Source: Salpingoeca rosetta | Lineage: Eukaryota > Protista > Choanoflagellata | DNA length: 64,000 nucleotides | Assembly (NCBI GenBank): GCA_033442325.1 | Contig: JAWQFM010000018.1 | Span: 918,996 to 982,995 of the forward strand | Direction: 5' to 3' | Shown here: positions 337 through 64,000 of the stretch, piece by piece | Layout: every line of letters begins with the position of its first letter | Position numbering within the stretch: position 1 is the stretch's first letter | Notes under the pieces: generated by a model | Told to the model about the DNA's origin: nothing | Databases searched by the model: none | The model's input: the letters and a program-made list of their open reading frames with translations, nothing else | Made by a program: the position numbers and the translations under genes

Positions 337-9243
<8,907 letters not shown>

Positions 9244-25772: not shown

Positions 25773-26737
25773 ACACACACACACAGAGACGAGAGACACG
25801 ACAACGGCACAGACACATACAACAACACACATGCGCGGGAAATGCAGAGCTACACAGAATGACAACCCAGCGGCACTGAATCACCTACGATACGCCCATG
25901 GCATACGCGGGTCCGGGCCATGAAGGTTTCCAGCAGTTGGTGCGGGCGCAGGGGGGCTGCTGGGGCGTGTGGCGGTGTACAAATGGGGGTTTATTGGCAA
26001 TGGCTTATGACACGAAGGGGACGTAGCCTGGTGACATGTTGGCTGAATATTCTTCAGAAGTCCTTGGGGAGGGCATACGACTACCCTTTCNNNNNNNNNN
26101 NNNNNNNNNNNNNNNNNNNNNNNNNNNNNNNNNNNNNNNNNNNNNNNNNNNNNNNNNNNNNNNNNNNNNNNNNNNNNNNNNNNNNNNNNNGTTACAGAAT
26201 TAGGTTAGCCTGGAGTGAACTGATAAAAAAAAAAAAAAGGATAAATGTATGAAGGTAACTGGTCGCATACGCTATAAATCAGCGTAGACCTCGGATGCAA
26301 CACAAAAAAAAAAAAAAAACAAGAGAGCTACGACGTAGTCGACAGAATGATGCCGGCACATCGCCCTGAACGATACCAAGAGACGCACGGAAAAAGATAT
26401 CACCTATAACGACCTAAAAGAAAAAAAAAAATGAACCTCCGTCAGGTGCGTAGCACACACCCACACACCCACACGCAACACACACACACACATACTGCAG
26501 GCCCAGTTTGAGCTGCTTCGCAAGCGATACGCCGTGCAGCAGGCGCGCGTCGAGGCCCTGGAGGTTGCCATCAGCGTGAGTGGTCCGATACTGTTATGGT
26601 CATGTGTGCGTACGCGTGTAAAGGCACTTTTTTCGGCAGTGTCATTCCACACGATGCAGTCATGCATCTCTTGTGCTGTAAACTGTTTGTTCTTCACAGT
26701 GTCGTGTCGCTAGAACTACACTCCCATCTCCCCCCTC

Positions 26738-55488: not shown

Positions 55489-56011
55489 CTCGGCCCTTCC
55501 TTTGTCCTGTTGTTCCTCCATCACATCACACTTCCTCCCTTGTATTTCTTTCCTTCCTTGTTCCCTTGCTGCTCCTCCACGTTTGTGCTCTTGCGTCGTG
55601 TGCACACCAATGAACGTGGTGTGGTGTGGTGTGTAGCTGCTTCTGCTGCTGCTGTATGCCTGCTTCTCCACAACACTCTTTCTTCTCTGTAACCGCTGTT
55701 ATTACTGCTCTTGCCTGCATGTCTTCTTCCAGTTGCAGCCCTCACTTGTGTCTCACTCGCGTGTCCTGTGCACTTCTCATGCACGCTTGTGACGAGAGTT
55801 CTTGGCATTTACTGGTGTCGATGAAACATTGTGACAACAAAACAAAACCAAACAAACGGCAGGATCGCGCACTACACACAAACACACACACACACAGAGA
55901 CACACAAACACACACACACACACACACACAAACACACACCGCTTCTGTCTGGCACCTCACTAAACATGTTCCAAACATGCGTGCGCATGCGAGCAGCCGG
56001 CGTGGAGGCGG

Positions 56012-56198
56012 CTACCTGCGGCGCGAGCGACGACGGCGGCGCCCAGAGTCACCGCCACCAGAGGGCTGCCCCATGTGGAATGTGCCACCTGCCAGGGAGG
56101 AGAGGTGATAGATGGGAGCAATGGTGAGTCCATGTCGCGAGTGTGGGGATGGGGAAGAAAAGTGAAAGCCACATGAATCAACACAGTGGACACACACG

Positions 56199-56230
<32 letters not shown>

Positions 56231-56244
56231 TGCACGCACAGACG

Positions 56245-56293
<49 letters not shown>

Positions 56294-56455
56294 CACACCA
56301 CACAGTAATAGCCCGAGAAACACTAATAACGTGTTAGTACTTTAACAGCCGTCTGCACGAGATATGACCCTAAGAATCGCGAATTGCTATTGTGTTATAC
56401 ATCACGACTGGCGGAGACCAACTATGTACTCGTTGACTCACACATGCACACACAG

Positions 56456-56494
<39 letters not shown>

Positions 56495-59400
56495 TGCACA
56501 CACAGACGCACGCACACACGCACACACACAGACACACAGACACCTATTCAAACATGCACACACCTGGGCTCTGCATGCCCGCAGGGCTACCAAAGGGCGA
56601 CTGTCCATTGTTATTACTTGGAGAGAAAGCACCACCAGCACCACCAGCACCAAACGGCCCAGCTGAGCCAGGCCCGCTCGCACCAAACGTCTTGCCAACG
56701 CCACCGCCAGCACCAAAGGAGGGTTTGCCTGCACCAAACGTGGCCCCTGCACCACCCATGGACATCTGCCCACCGCCAGCGGGCTTGGACGCGCCGAACG
56801 AGGGCTTGCGACCACCGCCACCGCTGGAGAAGGAGAACGGGGGGTTACCGCCTCCAGTACCGCTGCCACCTGCTTGGAACTGTGGCTTGCCCATGCCACC
56901 ACCAGCGCCACCAAACATCCCAGCACCACCAGGCTTTGCCGACGAGGAGGAGGAGGAGGACATCGGCATGCCACCGGTGCTGCCAAACGATGGTGACTTG
57001 CCCATAAACGACCCTTGTTGCTGCTGTGGTTGCTGCTGCATGGATGTGGGTGCCTTGCCACCAAACGTTGGCACGTTCTTGTTGCTGCTGCCAGGACCAC
57101 CACTGCCGCCGCCACCAAACTGGAAGCCGCCACCCTGACCAAAGCCGCCTGGTTTCTGCTGCTGCTGCTGGCCCCCGAATGAGGGTTTGCCTGCCTGAAA
57201 CGCAGACGGCTGGCCAAAGGACGGCTTGCTTCCTCCAGAGAAGCTAAACGGCTTCTGCTGCTGCTGTTGGCCAGCACCGCTTGCAGCAAAGGGCGACCCA
57301 CTCTGCTGCTTCTGCATGGCACCGCCGCCGCCAAAGGGAGAGCCCGTCTGGGATGTGCTGGTCGACGACCCGCCGCCAAACGACAGCGCTTTCTGCGGCT
57401 GCTGGCCTTGTTGTCCCTGTTGTTGTCCTCCACCTGCACCAAAGGACGGGGTTCGCTGCGCACCCCCGCCACCGCCAAACTGAAATGGCTTGGCACCACC
57501 ACTTGGTTGCTGCTGCTGCTGCTGCTGCTGCTGCGGTTGTTGGCCGGCGCCCTTGCCAAACTGGAAAGGAGCTGGGGACGACGACGACGACGACGACGAC
57601 GCAGAGAACGATGGCTTCTGCTGCTGCTGCGCACCGCCACCACCACCGCCCCCAAATTGGAACGGCTTAGCAGCGCCACCGCTCTGCTGCTGCTGCTGCT
57701 GCTGCTGTTGTTGTTGTTGTTGGCCACCAAATGGGCTGCCTGTCGGCTTCTGGCCACCGCCAAACTGAAACGGCTTCTGCTGCTGCTGCTGACCCTGCTG
57801 ACCCTGCTGCTGGCTCTGTGGTGCGCCTCCAAACGGTGAGGAGGATACTGATGTGGTGGGGGCGCCCTTCCCTGCAGAGAAGCTGAAGGGCGACGACTTT
57901 TGGGCCTGTGCAGTGGCGCTGCTGCCAGTGGCCGCTGATGTGGCAGACGTTTGCGCACCACCAGCACCACCAAAGGCCGGGGGCTTGGCACCGCCACCAA
58001 ACGGCGATGCAGATGCTGACGCCGACGATGTTGGTGCTGCTGGTTTGTCTGTTGCACCCGGCTTCTTGGCTGCAAACGCAAACGGCGAGGACGAAGACGA
58101 CGACGACGTTGCGGGCAAGGCTGGCGTGGCTGCACCGCTGCTGGTGCCTGCAGGCCTGGTCGCACCAAATGGCGACGACTTTGCACCGTCTCCAGCGCTG
58201 GTGGGCTTGGTACCACCAAACGAGAACGGCTTGGGCGCGGTAGCCTTGTCACCGCCACCTGCTGCCGTGGTGGATGCTGATGCCGACGTGGACGATGGTG
58301 TGGACGATGATGCACCAAAGGGCGTGGGTTTCGAGGCATCGGCGCTCTTGGTTGCTGCGCCAAATGGGCTGCTGCCACTGCTACCGCTGGTGGCAGGTTT
58401 GCTCTGTGATGCCTTGAAAGCGCCAAATGGCGAGCTGGCAGCTGCTGGCTTGGTGGCACCAGCGTCGTCGCCAGCAGTGGCAGCGGCAGTGGCGGGTTTG
58501 CTGCTGCCAAAGCTGAATGACGGCTTGGCACCAGACGATGATGATGCATCGGCCTTTGGCTTGTCACCGCCTGTCTTTGCCGCGGGCGCTTTGAAGGCAC
58601 CAAAGGGGCTGGCAGCAGCCTTGTCAGGCTTGTCAGCGCCACCACCGCCTGCGGGTTTACCAAAGGGCGATGCCTTGGACGCTCCCGTATTTGCATCGTC
58701 GGCCTTGGCGGGTGGTTTGGCCATGCTGCCAAACGGTGATGCTTTGGCGCCCGATGCTGCACTTGCACTTGCACTTGCTGTTGTTGTTGGTGTGTCCTCT
58801 GCCTTCTTCGGCATGGCAAAGGAGCCGAGGGAGGAGGCTGCAGAGGTGCCACCAGCAGGCTTTGCACTGCCAAACGACAGCGGCTTCTGCTCTGCACCGC
58901 CGGCCTTGGTCGCGTCGCCCGTCGACGGCGCCTTGCTCGTGGCCGTCGTCGAGTCCGTGTGCGTCACCTGCAAGCAGTGGGTGAGGACATGGGATGAGGG
59001 ACGTTGATGTTGTGGATTTGGTCAGTCAGGGTCACACGAGGCGAGGGATGTGAGCATGCAGATGGAGAGGTGGATGAACAGTCACAGGAATGCAACGAAG
59101 CAGAGGGGCAGAATTAGACGCACACACACACACAGACATAGACACACACATACTTGCACACACACACACAGATACAAGACACACACAGACACAGGCACAC
59201 ACACACACACACACAGACACACCACGCAACATGCAACTCACGGCGAAGATAGCACGTGTGCGTTCGGATTTGCGGTCGCTGCTCCATGCCTTCTCTGCTG
59301 TCGACGATGCCTTCTTGACAATGGCCGGCTCCTCAAGCATGGCCTTTGCTCGCTGCGCCTGTGCTGTCGTCAAGTGTCCGCGCATTGGGCGCCGCTGCGG

Positions 59401-59926
59401 CATTGCAATCGAGCGTGGCTTCTTCGCCTCTGCTGCTCCATCACCATCACCATCAGCACCATCATGACCTCCGCCGGTCTTGGTTGCGGCGCTCTCGTCT
59501 CGCGCTGGCGCTGCTGTTGCTGTTGTCGACGCAACGTTGGCATCCCCCTTGCCAGCGCGCTTGCGTGGCTGCTCATCCTCGTCTTCATCCACGTGACCAT
59601 CACCACGACGGCTGCGTGCAGATGCAGCACTCTTCGCACCGCTGCTGGCTGTTGCGTCAGTCGCTACTGCTGTCTTGGCAAGCTTCCGCTCAGGACGCAC
59701 GCCGGCCTGAGACGCACCGGCACCTGTCATATGCACACAGGGATGGGTTGGTAAGGCGGGGAGGAGGGGGAAAGGGGATGAGGTGACAACTCGAGGAAAA
59801 GAAAAACGATGCAGGCCGAGCCACATAGAACAAAGAGACAGGTACACGCAGCAGGTACATGTACGCGGGGACACAGAGACAGGCAAACACACAGACAGAC
59901 AGACAAAAAAACGCACACACGCACAC

Positions 59927-59976
<50 letters not shown>

Positions 59977-61072
59977 ACACACACACCTCGCTTTGCGCGT
60001 GCGGATGAGAGACGCGGCGCAGCGGACCGCTTGCCGCGCTTTGCAGGGCGCCCTCTGCCCGACACATCAACACCATCCTCGTCACCAATATCGCGGCTGC
60101 GGCTGCCGCCGCCACCAACATCACCATAACCATTGCCATCACCAGCAGACCTGCGCTTTGCACCGCGTGCGTCGTCGTCATCATCGCCCGGGCTGCGGTG
60201 CTTGAGCTCCCACTCGTACTTCTCCGTAAGCTGCCGCTGTCGCTGTAAGTCGCGTGTCATCGTCTGCAGACTCTGGTTGTACCGTTCGCGCTCCCGGCGC
60301 AACGCCTCAGCCAACTCCTCAGCCACCAGCTCAGATGTCTTCGGCGACGCCACACCGCTGGCCGCTGTCGATGCTGTTGCTGTATGCTGTGCATCAGGGG
60401 ACCTGCCACGTGTGACCGTTGCCTCTGATGATGGCGCTGTATCTGCTGTGGCCGTGCCTTCTGCTGCTGCTGGTGATGTGTGTGGTGCTGACTCGTCCGC
60501 CTCTGCGGCTTCATGTTGCCGCTGCTGCTGCTGACGCGACACTTGAAACTTGGCCGGCGACGGCACCTGCATTTGTGGTTGAATGCGTTCATGACACGGT
60601 TGGTGTTGACGAGTGTGAGTGAGTGAGTGAGTGAGTGAGTGAGTGAGTGAGTGAGTGAGTGAGTGAGTGAGTGAGTGAGTGAGTGAGTGAGTGAGTGAGT
60701 GAGTGAGTGAGTGAGTGAGTGAGTGAGTGAGTGAGTGAGCGAGTGTGTGCGTGTGTGTGCGTGTGTGTGTACGTGCGTGTGGGCACGCATGAGCATGTGC
60801 ACGACAGACGACAATTATCACAGCCTTGCATAGCAGGGCTGTTGTCTCACGTTTGCGTGGACGACGTCGTTCATGTATGTCTTCCTGGCCACGGGGGCCG
60901 GGGTGGAGATTGCCATGGGCTCGCTCCTGGGCTTGCGAGCTGCACGTGCCACAGCAGCAAATGCAGTTCATGTCAGAACCATGCTGTCACAGCGGCCGCA
61001 CACAGGCGCTACAAGGACGCAGCACGTTCCCAGCAAAACCACATGCACACACACACATGTACACACACACAT

Positions 61073-61110
<38 letters not shown>

Positions 61111-61884
61111 GTGCGTTCATGGTACCTGGGGGCTGGTATGAGCGAGCGTAGGAGCGGGAGAGGCGCACCACACCTGTGTTTGGCGAGGTGTGTTGGCCCT
61201 GCAAGCGCGGTGGCGAGCCTTTTGGCGTGGACGTGACCACCCCTGCCCGTCTGTTGAGACACAAAGCAGCAAGCAGCACGAGAAGTGATGCGCGTGAGAT
61301 GAGATGGCACTTTCTGATCTCGACGAGAGATACATGAGTACAGAGGACTACAGTGCAGGTGCGTGTAGGCAGCTCACGCCCAACAACAACATGCACGACA
61401 TGCATGGACCTTCGTTGACACACCGTGAGCCGTACGCTGTTGCTGGCCTTGTGGCAGTGAATGGAATGGCAGAGACGTTGGCAGTACCAGCTGCTTGTCG
61501 AGCAGCCGTGGATGGAGCCGTACCAAAGCCACCACGTGCAGGCGAGCGCTGGACGGCACCAGCACCGGCGCGTCTGCTCAGCGTAGCTGTGCCATTGGCG
61601 CCATGGCCAAAGAGACGGTTCTCGCGTTGTTGTTGTTGCTGGTGCTGGTGCTGCTGGTGTTGTTGCTCTGCGTACACGCGGCCGCCGTTTTGCGTGGGCT
61701 TCATGTGCTGTGTTGATACGGATGGTCGCTTGGAGAGCAGCGTGGCTGCTATGCCAGACACCAGTGCCGCAAGGACGAGCGTCACTGTGACATGCAGCAA
61801 GGGCAAACCCATGGCAACACCAGCAACGAGCACAACAAGCCCCGCCACGGCCACCAGGCCAACACGTTGCGCCAGCTGTGCCAT
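56012..61884 (-). CDS. Transmembrane FG-repeat nucleoporin, POM121-like architecture (~1390 aa, 7 exons)
   Basis: Exons 61884-61424, 61250-61174 (or -61126), 60939-60851, 60566-59987, 59723-59242, 58967-56564 and 56088-56012 all join in phase through GT-AG. Hydrophobic N-terminus, many SPFG/PFSFG/PFQFG repeats, and tail [14 protein letters not shown]. Confidence 0.8.
60615..60740. repeat. (GAGT)n microsatellite, intronic
   Basis: Directly visible. Confidence 0.95.
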
Positions 61885-61961
61885 CGTGCCTGTGGGGAGG
61901 GACAGAGCGCGAGCGCAAGTATAGACGGGCGGGTACGTGTTTGCGTGCACGTGCGTCTGCT

Positions 61962-62007
<46 letters not shown>

Positions 62008-62455: not shown

Positions 62456-64000
62456 ATGAAGGTGGACTTCCAGATCCCGGCCGACGCCGACGATCTGCTG
62501 GCCACAGATGCAAATGTCTTCTCTGTCGCAACCTTCTCCGATGTGCGCAGAATCTCGGAGTACAACCTCAACGACATGATTGCAGGTGCAGTTGTTGGTG
62601 GTTGAAGTGGTGGTCCTTCGTTGATGTTGTTGGTGTTGGTGATGTGCCTGCTGTTGTTCCGAGTGTTGTTGGTGTCGCAAGTACTGCCACTATGGCTGTT
62701 CGTACTGACACGACATGTACGCGTGCGTGCGTGCGTATGCCTCGCTCTGTATGTTGTTTTTGTTGTTACCGTCCTTATTGTCGTCTTTGTCACTGTTGTT
62801 GTTGCGACAGATGCGACAAAGACATTCAAGGATGGCACGGAGATCAGCTACAACTCGACATTTGACGTCTTCTTCAGCCTGGCACGGTGGGACAAGCGAT
62901 TGTACCGTGGCTTAAGGCACTGCTTGTCCCAGCCTTGGTACACACGCCCACTCATATGTCACACAACACCAAAATTGCATGCTCAGGTTTTTCGGGGACT
63001 TGAGCCCCACAGTGCAGAAAGCAACCTGCTCATCACTGTTGTCAGGTAAGCACACACAAGTGCGTGTGTGTGTATGTGTGTGTTGTGTGCGTGTGTTTGT
63101 CGTGTGGGATTGTTGTTACATGCTTTTGTCGATGATAATTCCAGGAAGCGGTTGTGGCGGTGGAGGTGCGGGATGAAAATCAGATGGCGACACGAATTCA
63201 CAGGGGTTTCTTCACCCATGTGTGCTTGCTAATGTACAACCCGCATGTCCTTGTACTCACCCATTTCTCACTCATCTACATCCAAACCTCTCCACCCCAT
63301 CCGTCCACATATCAGGGATGCAGTGGTTTGGGCGCACGCTCCAGTCTCGCCTGCCTGAGATGAACAGCAACAGCAGCGAGGCGCAGCTTGGCCGCAACTG
63401 CCTCAAGATGTACACGTACCTCATCAGCTTGATTGCCTCCCATCAGGAGGGAGAGGCCGTCAAGCCAACGCAGCACCTGGGCGGCGCCACAAAGAAGACC
63501 AAGAAAACCAAGTCTGAGTTTTCGTGGAGCCAGGAGCGAGAACGCCTGCTTGCCATGATGCTGTCGCTCCTTCAGCTCGATGTGCCAAAGCTGTGGCCCA
63601 TGTCCTGCCCCGAGGAGCAGTTTGTCAAGTAAGCGAGAAGGGGAGTGAGAACGAGTGTGGTGTGTGTGTAGGAGGAGAGAGAGAGAGAGGTGACATTGTA
63701 TGTTGTGTTGTGTGTGTGTGTGTAGGAGTTAGAGGTGTGAAACTGTATGCTGTGTTTATTGCATTGTGTATGTGAGTGTGAGGATTGTGGGTGTTAGCAA
63801 GTGTTGCAAGACAGTGGGCGCGTGTGAGTGTGCTTAATGAGCTGTCCATACCAACAGCAAGCACATCACATTTTGCTCACACCACTGGCCTCTTGTTGTC
63901 TGCCTTTTCTTCCTTGCAGCCTCATTACGCGGTTTGCATATGTTGCGCTGGAGAACCCTGAGGTGGTCAAGGACAAAGACGTGATGCACCTGCTCACCAG
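62456..64000 (+). CDS. NCAPD2: Condensin I subunit CAP-D2 (Cnd1), 5' part; runs off the window
   Basis: MKVDFQIPADADDLL.., FDVFFSL, RNCLKMYTYLI..GGATKKTKK..FSWSQERERLLAMMLSLLQLDVPKLW..EEQFVN|LITRFAYVALENP matches the Cnd1 N-terminal region. Confidence 0.9.

Follow-up and report, generated by a model that had tools for sequence, protein, structure and literature searches.

The question raised by this locus is whether the choanoflagellate Salpingoeca rosetta encodes a nucleoporin with phenylalanine-glycine (FG) repeats that carries its own membrane anchor, in the manner of POM121. In published surveys, POM121 is confined to vertebrates or to chordates (PMC2951903, PMC6371224), and knowledge of how other lineages tether the pore to its membrane is incomplete. 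The gene in question occupies positions 61884 to 56012, on the minus strand, of a 64,000-nucleotide stretch of contig JAWQFM010000018.1; this whole stretch is hereafter called the window. The reading that we favour, with a probability of about 0.6, is that the locus holds one real gene, whose product would be an FG nucleoporin of about 1400 amino acids (aa) with a membrane anchor, POM121-like in its architecture only. It is based on the gene model and on the predicted properties of the encoded protein, as described below.

Indirect evidence for a probable joining of the anchor exon to the FG exons

The gene was rebuilt independently from the sequence, as seven exons that are joined in phase to give 4218 nucleotides (nt), corresponding to 1405 aa and a TAG stop codon. 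A first-pass annotation of the locus, made from the letters of the DNA alone, had likewise described seven in-phase exons, and this part of it stands, whereas its length of ~1390 aa is corrected here to 1405 aa. All six introns are of the GT...AG type, each of the six acceptors is CAG, and the long microsatellites are confined to the inferred introns of the gene. Without the splicing of intron 6, the open reading frame would stop seven codons beyond the donor of exon 6 (...SPGVCMFE and stop). The start context of Met1 has an A at position -3 and a G at position +4. At 5 nt before this ATG there is a strong acceptor-like site with a (CA)n tract ahead of it, which suggests a putative intron in the 5' untranslated region that ends at that point.

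In order to evaluate the individual exons, codon usage was scored with a calibration on seven long exons of the window, in a leave-one-out manner, and the scores were compared with those of non-coding frames. Coding-like codon usage in the frame of the model was found for exons 1, 4, 5 and 6, whose scores are reached by 0-1.5% of the non-coding frames: 1.5% for the whole of exon 1 (0.098 bits per codon), 0.6% for exon 4 (a score of 0.35), 0.5% for exon 5 and 0% for exon 6. The part of exon 1 that follows the anchor (aa 53-153) and continues its open frame has by itself a score that is matched by 1.1% of the non-coding frames. Exon 7 is short, and its codon-usage support is weak.

Additionally, we used the word share, that is, the fraction of sampled 31-mers of positions 56000-61990 that are present in sequencing runs. 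In eight runs from two studies this fraction is 0.72-0.73; six of the eight have contig sets of 21-33 Mb, which is the size of a transcriptome, and the label RNA for these runs is a guess. In three runs with contig sets of genome size (~60 Mb), the fraction is 0.94. The shares predicted from the gene model are 0.675-0.722 with all seven exons, 0.58-0.61 with exons 4-7 only, and 0.76-0.78 with intron 6 retained. The word shares support the expression of exons 1-3 and the removal of intron 6, the retention of which is disfavoured by this model; linkage on the same molecule is not proven by them.

The same data have to be weighed against another explanation, namely that the gene encodes a soluble FG nucleoporin of the nuclear basket, a counterpart of Nup153, Nup1 or Nup60, with a start at Met61 or Met204, or with the anchored form as a minor isoform from an alternative first exon. 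We consider this unlikely, although it deserves attention, and several of the points in its favour weigh at the same time against a single anchored product. The 52 codons of the anchor segment (aa 1-52) taken alone are not separable from non-coding sequence, as 22% of the non-coding frames match their score, a measure that is biased against them because the training genes hold few membrane segments. Exons 2 and 3 are short, their codon scores are weak (reached by 9% and 5.5% of the non-coding frames, respectively), and both of them are required to maintain the frame. Moreover, the in-frame Met61 and Met204 would give rise to anchor-less products if transcription began further downstream; Met204, in exon 3, is a possible alternative start of its own, the product of which would omit the anchor. 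For human POM121, a soluble isoform that arises from the use of another 5' end has been reported (PMC4888837). In this GT-rich window, where hydrophobic open frames are common, a hydrophobic stretch is by itself weak support for an anchor. The union of exon 1 and exon 6 on one mRNA is read from the predicted open reading frame. Finally, the searches turned up no homologue of this layout in another species, so that comparative support is lacking; the databases searched, here and below, were without the proteins of the source organism, and no search returned the window's own products.

On the other side, Met1 has the best start context and lies 5 nt past the acceptor-like site, the codons for aa 53-153 are coding-like in the very frame that is open through the anchor, and exons 4-7 by themselves would not account for the high word share of the RNA-sized runs. 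Besides, no polyadenylation signal was found after the stop codon that would be met by reading through into intron 1. A further candidate, in which exon 1 would be a piece of a neighbouring gene, was ruled out, because both neighbours lie on the plus strand. Judging from the splice sites, the reading phase, the codon usage, the gene neighbourhood and the word share of the RNA-sized runs, the anchor exon and the FG exons probably form one gene, and we think it quite likely that the anchor belongs to its main product.

Features of the predicted protein

The N-terminal segment (aa 1-52) of the predicted protein begins with MAQLAQR; a run of 43 hydrophobic residues (aa 8-50) comes next, with the sequence GLPLLH in its middle, and then SKRPS; there is no charged residue between R7 and K52. 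Nowhere outside this run does the 19-aa Kyte-Doolittle mean of the protein exceed 1.6 (maximum within the run, 2.54), and both halves of the run are favourable for membrane insertion on the Hessa scale. AlphaFold2, run without an alignment, predicts one helix at aa 2-50 with a pLDDT (predicted local distance difference test score) of 77-92, which cannot separate a hairpin from a span. The six-frame translation of the whole window contains 152 hydrophobic stretches of at least 38 aa, nearly all of which are encoded by microsatellites or triplet repeats (VCVC..., poly-V, poly-L, poly-I), and the putative anchor is among the few that are non-repetitive and free of Cys. Since hydrophobic microsatellite frames are so common, transmembrane calls that are made on raw open reading frames of this genome need a check of sequence complexity.

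The anchor is followed by a region (aa 51-299) that is rich in A, S, T, Q, R and P and contains 12% order-promoting residues. In total, a basic, disorder-like linker of ~310 aa separates the anchor from the first strong K/R cluster. Within exon 4, AlphaFold2 predicts one long helix at aa 300-348 (49 aa; pLDDT, 92-98), with a moderate heptad pattern, and the remainder of this exon is predicted to be disordered. The K/R clusters are located within aa 361-523 and comprise AKRRS at 361, PAKRGKR at 399-405, a cluster at 415-418, PRKRAGK at 471-477 and AKKPR at 518-521; at the level of the motif, KRGKR fits the classical K-K/R-x-K/R pattern of a nuclear localisation signal (NLS). The whole model of 1405 aa contains no Cys.

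The segment aa 580-1380 (801 aa) contains 34 FG dipeptides, as compared to 12 expected from its composition. The possibility that this enrichment is an artefact of composition was ruled out, because the maximum in 10,000 shuffles was 24. The motifs include SPFG (eleven times), PSFG (six), FQFG (five) and FSFG (two); there are seven FxFG and no GLFG. Phe is almost the sole hydrophobic residue of the segment (58 F, 4 V, 4 L and 12 M, with no I, W or Y), and the median gap from one Phe to the next is 12 aa. The first half contains K, and the second half is rich in G and Q, with no acidic residue in aa 950-1380. By its composition, spacing and motif enrichment, the predicted segment is a textbook-like FG-nucleoporin domain. 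The exon that encodes it is also open in another frame of the same strand (56438-58897, minus; 819 aa, rich in P, R and Q) and on the opposite strand (57853-59007, plus; 384 aa). These additional long frames are attributable to the low-complexity composition and could mislead an annotation that is based on open reading frames.

As regards the elements proposed in the first-pass annotation, the N-terminal hydrophobic peptide was found exactly at aa 8-50, the four NLS-like strings that it quoted are all present within aa 361-523, its ~800 aa of FG repeats correspond to the 801-aa domain, and the basic tail appears in the model as the Arg-rich aa 1381-1405, encoded by exon 7, the least certain part.

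If the protein is indeed a membrane-anchored FG nucleoporin, its mode of action may be envisaged as follows. The N-terminal helix of 43 aa, split by GLPLLH into halves of ~20 aa, would insert into the membrane of the endoplasmic reticulum and nuclear envelope, forming a hairpin, a single span or two spans, and the positive flank that follows (SKRPS...K) would hold the remaining protein on the cytoplasmic, pore or nucleoplasmic side. By way of the disordered linker and the K/R clusters, importin alpha/beta would bring the protein to the pore and the inner membrane, which has been shown for POM121 and Heh2. Docking to scaffold nucleoporins, or oligomerisation, might be served by the helix at aa 300-348, and the FG domain and the Arg-rich tail would be positioned within the channel or close to it, where they would bind transport receptors. 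In this manner, the protein would work like POM121 and TtPom121 of Tetrahymena. Salpingoeca rosetta is genetically tractable, and the prediction can be tested by tagging.

Database searches and surroundings of the gene

Every exon piece was compared to Pfam-A with hmmscan (E up to 1 or 10; the FG domain also as halves), and no family was found above noise. The POM121 family (which we take to be PF15229) was not matched by any exon piece, the N-terminal family of Nup153 (presumably PF08604) was not matched by exons 1-5, and the FG-repeat models were not matched by the FG domain, whole or in halves. The last result may be due to the composition filter of HMMER and to the lack of GLFG-type repeats. 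The profile comparison with POM121 and Nup153 that had been proposed for this locus thus gave no match for any exon piece searched. Using phmmer against 1.84 billion protein representatives, no relative of exon 5 was detected, and the only hit was a spurious one to an unrelated tandem-repeat protein. Likewise, a word-indexed protein search with exon 6, both whole and as residues 1-140, yielded no homologue, and there was no match in the ESM Atlas for exons 1 and 5, in the PDB (phmmer) for exons 1, 4, 5 and 6, or in a scan of JGI metagenomes for exon 4. As the proteins of the source organism are absent from the databases, these blanks say little about its annotation or about orthologues in close relatives. 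Disordered nucleoporins diverge beyond the reach of sequence detection, so that blanks of this kind are expected and do not exclude descent from a known family.

The lack of a family assignment from any library, including the Pfam FG-repeat models, would also agree with a protein that has nothing to do with the pore, for example a membrane-anchored low-complexity protein, be it a matrix protein rich in G, S, Q and F or the scaffold of a condensate, in which the likeness to an FG domain would be superficial. This we regard as very improbable, since the FG dipeptide is nearly threefold enriched, the Phe residues are regularly spaced, and the near absence of other hydrophobic residues, the lack of Cys and a second half without acidic residues are hallmarks of nucleoporin FG domains. 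The position of the K/R clusters, which separate the repeats from the anchor, and the positive charge that follows the anchor, which favours a cytoplasmic or nucleoplasmic orientation of the protein bulk, argue in the same direction, that is, for the membrane-anchored FG nucleoporin.

The features of the gene and of its surroundings are listed in Table 1. The nucleoporin gene and the gene for condensin complex subunit 1 are arranged head to head, with start codons ~570 bp apart, and this arrangement suggests a shared bidirectional promoter. On the other side, the 3' end of the nucleoporin gene faces that of a convergent multi-exon amino-acid permease gene. A search for contigs encoding a neighbouring open reading frame of 545 aa found no record.

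Table 1. Positions of the predicted exons of the nucleoporin gene and of other features of the window (position 1 is the first letter of the window; a slash in a splice site marks the junction).
Feature	Position	Strand	Description
Exon 1	61424-61884	minus	aa 1-153; ATG at 61884; anchor aa 8-50 encoded by 61735-61863, then Q-rich basic disordered segment
Exon 2	61126-61250	minus	125 nt, aa 154-195; basic, S/T/P-rich
Exon 3	60851-60939	minus	89 nt, aa 196-225; carries Met204
Exon 4	59987-60566	minus	aa 226-418; acidic/S/T-rich segment, predicted helix aa 300-348 (60198-60344), basic clusters including ARAKR
Exon 5	59242-59723	minus	aa 419-579; Ala-rich charged segment with PRKRAGK and AKKPRS
Exon 6	56564-58967	minus	aa 580-1380; FG-repeat domain
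Exon 7	56012-56088	minus	aa 1381-1405 and TAG; Arg-rich tail; least supported exon
Acceptor-like site of putative 5' untranslated region intron	61889-61891	minus	polypyrimidine tract, then cacAG/G, with (CA)n before; 5 nt upstream of ATG; possible donor AA/GTGAGA at 62242-62241
Condensin complex subunit 1 (upstream neighbour)	62456-64000	plus	ATG at 62456; Pfam Cnd1_N, E = 2.6e-20 on 63222-63629
Amino-acid permease (downstream neighbour)	52066 to ~55100	plus	AA_permease_2, E = 1.9e-27 and 2.6e-21 on two exons
Tyrosine phosphatase exon	827-4795	minus	Pfam Y_phosphatase, E = 1.1e-57
Assembly gap	26091-26190		exactly 100 N

With regard to the repeats of the introns, intron 2 of the nucleoporin gene contains a (GT)n tract at 61029-61119, and intron 3 contains at 60615-60757 a near-perfect (CTCA)n tract on the strand of the gene, with ~36 copies and 96% matches; the other introns contain (GT)n. 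The introns of the amino-acid permease gene are likewise filled with (GT)n or (CA)n tracts. Elsewhere in the window, the best relative of the tyrosine phosphatase exon is MONBRDRAFT_38246 of Monosiga brevicollis (50% identity), followed by animal PTPRS (33-35%), with no near-identical match. As MONBRDRAFT_38246 also bears the BRO1 and ALIX V-domain Pfam families, the phosphatase of the window looks like HD-PTP/PTPN23. The run of 100 N indicates that the window derives from a scaffold-level assembly.

Comparison with known nucleoporins and inner-membrane proteins

Nup153, Nup1 and Nup60 use the very start of the polypeptide for membrane binding, and importins are among their partners. The protein predicted here shares with them a disordered N-terminal half and a C-terminal domain of FxFG-type repeats, and its FxFG and SPFG repeats, NLS-like clusters and basic tail are just as typical of Nup153 and Nup1, which adds to the case for a soluble basket nucleoporin. 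Instead of an amphipathic helix, however, it has a uniformly hydrophobic, non-amphipathic stretch of 43 aa. Metazoan Nup153 carries zinc fingers of the RanBP2 type, of which there are none here because the model is devoid of Cys; a metazoan-type Nup153 was ruled out for this reason, and the unmatched Pfam Nup153 family also speaks against such a counterpart. It is important to mention that the table of Neumann et al. apparently lists no Nup153 for M. brevicollis (PMC2951903), so that a basket FG nucleoporin is still to be accounted for in the choanoflagellates, a place that the present gene might fill.

For the membrane-anchored FG nucleoporin that we favour, the closest comparison by layout is rat POM121. 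In that protein, a hydrophobic region at aa 29-72 was described as 'one (or two adjacent)' transmembrane segments and is accompanied by XFXFG repeats (PMC2119659), and the order of elements established by Kralt et al. is transmembrane segment, disordered linker and an NLS region at 290-484 (PMC4569319). According to the published layout, the hydrophobic stretch is of almost the same length in the two proteins (43 aa here and 44 aa in rat), long enough in each for one or two membrane passages; the NLS-like region follows a long disordered linker at aa 361-523 here, compared to 290-484 in rat; the C-terminal part carries repeats of the FxFG/xxFG kind; the sizes are 1405 aa and 1199 aa; and the protein bulk is predicted on the pore side in both cases. 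The differences are also evident. There is no detectable sequence similarity, the Pfam POM121 family is unmatched, the FG domain is much longer here (~800 aa, or 57% of the protein, with its G/Q-rich second half), and the choanoflagellate protein possesses a confidently predicted linker helix of 49 aa and an Arg-rich tail. The host differs as well: Neumann et al. found POM121 in vertebrates only, with none in M. brevicollis (PMC2951903), and a later survey found it in chordates only (PMC6371224). In the literature that we searched, this report of its absence is all that connects POM121 with choanoflagellates or with other unicellular holozoans.

A similar comparison can be made with yeast Heh1 and Heh2, in which a long disordered linker lies between a strong basic NLS and the transmembrane segment and importins pull the protein through the pore; POM121 uses the mirrored order of transmembrane segment, linker and NLS (PMC4569319). 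In the experiments of Kralt et al., the import of a membrane reporter failed once the linker was shortened to 53 residues (PMC4569319); the gap of ~310 aa between the predicted anchor and the first strong K/R cluster is well above this value. In contrast to the protein predicted here, Heh1 and Heh2 have LEM/MAN1 domains and no FG repeats, and they are residents of the inner membrane rather than components of the pore.

A further system is TtPom121 (TTHERM_00312730) of Tetrahymena thermophila, described by Iwamoto et al., which has an N-terminal transmembrane region, C-terminal FG repeats and NLS function in its N-terminal region (PMC5450191). It was assigned on the basis of architecture, expression and localisation, and not of sequence similarity, and its position on the nuclear side of macronuclear pores was shown experimentally (PMC5450191). 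In the predicted open reading frame of S. rosetta, a putative N-terminal transmembrane region would likewise be combined with C-terminal FG repeats; the location of its product at the pore is predicted, in contrast to the experimental location of TtPom121. Because the ciliates are far from the Holozoa, the likeness to TtPom121 points to convergence, or else to a layout that is very generic. The POM121 layout noticed in the first-pass annotation is thus borne out in silico, whereas its picture of POM121 as restricted to animals is tempered by TtPom121; of its two suggestions, that anchors of the POM121 type predate animals or that they arose convergently, the first gained no homology support, as the searches of Pfam, PDB, the ESM Atlas and the 1.84 billion representatives were blank.

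It may be asked whether the S. rosetta protein is a true orthologue of vertebrate POM121, in which case the ancestor of choanoflagellates and animals would have had a transmembrane-anchored FG nucleoporin, and most invertebrates would since have lost it or changed it so far that it is no longer recognised. The order of the elements and their approximate positions and sizes, which match those of rat POM121, and the known divergence of disordered nucleoporins past sequence detection are in accordance with this idea. We nevertheless find it doubtful, given the lack of any sequence similarity (Pfam POM121 unmatched for any exon, PDB blank), the restriction of POM121 to vertebrates or chordates in the surveys cited above, and a ciliate protein of the same layout, which indicates that this layout can arise independently or is too generic to prove descent. 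From the sequence, membership in the POM121 family is not established, and common descent and convergence cannot be told apart. In an equally tentative extension, the last ancestor shared by animals and choanoflagellates would already have possessed a POM121-type FG nucleoporin with a transmembrane anchor, with vertebrate POM121 as a retained, fast-evolving ancient gene and with the N-terminal membrane helices of Nup153 and Nup1 and the anchor of POM121 as variants of one ancestral tethered FG protein; we would give it little credence at present. If the favoured reading of a single membrane-anchored gene is true, an FG nucleoporin with its own anchor would exist in the sister group of animals, and either the origin of this type of anchor would be pushed back before animals, or the protein would be a second independent case after Tetrahymena, making the fusion of an anchor to FG repeats a recurrent solution.

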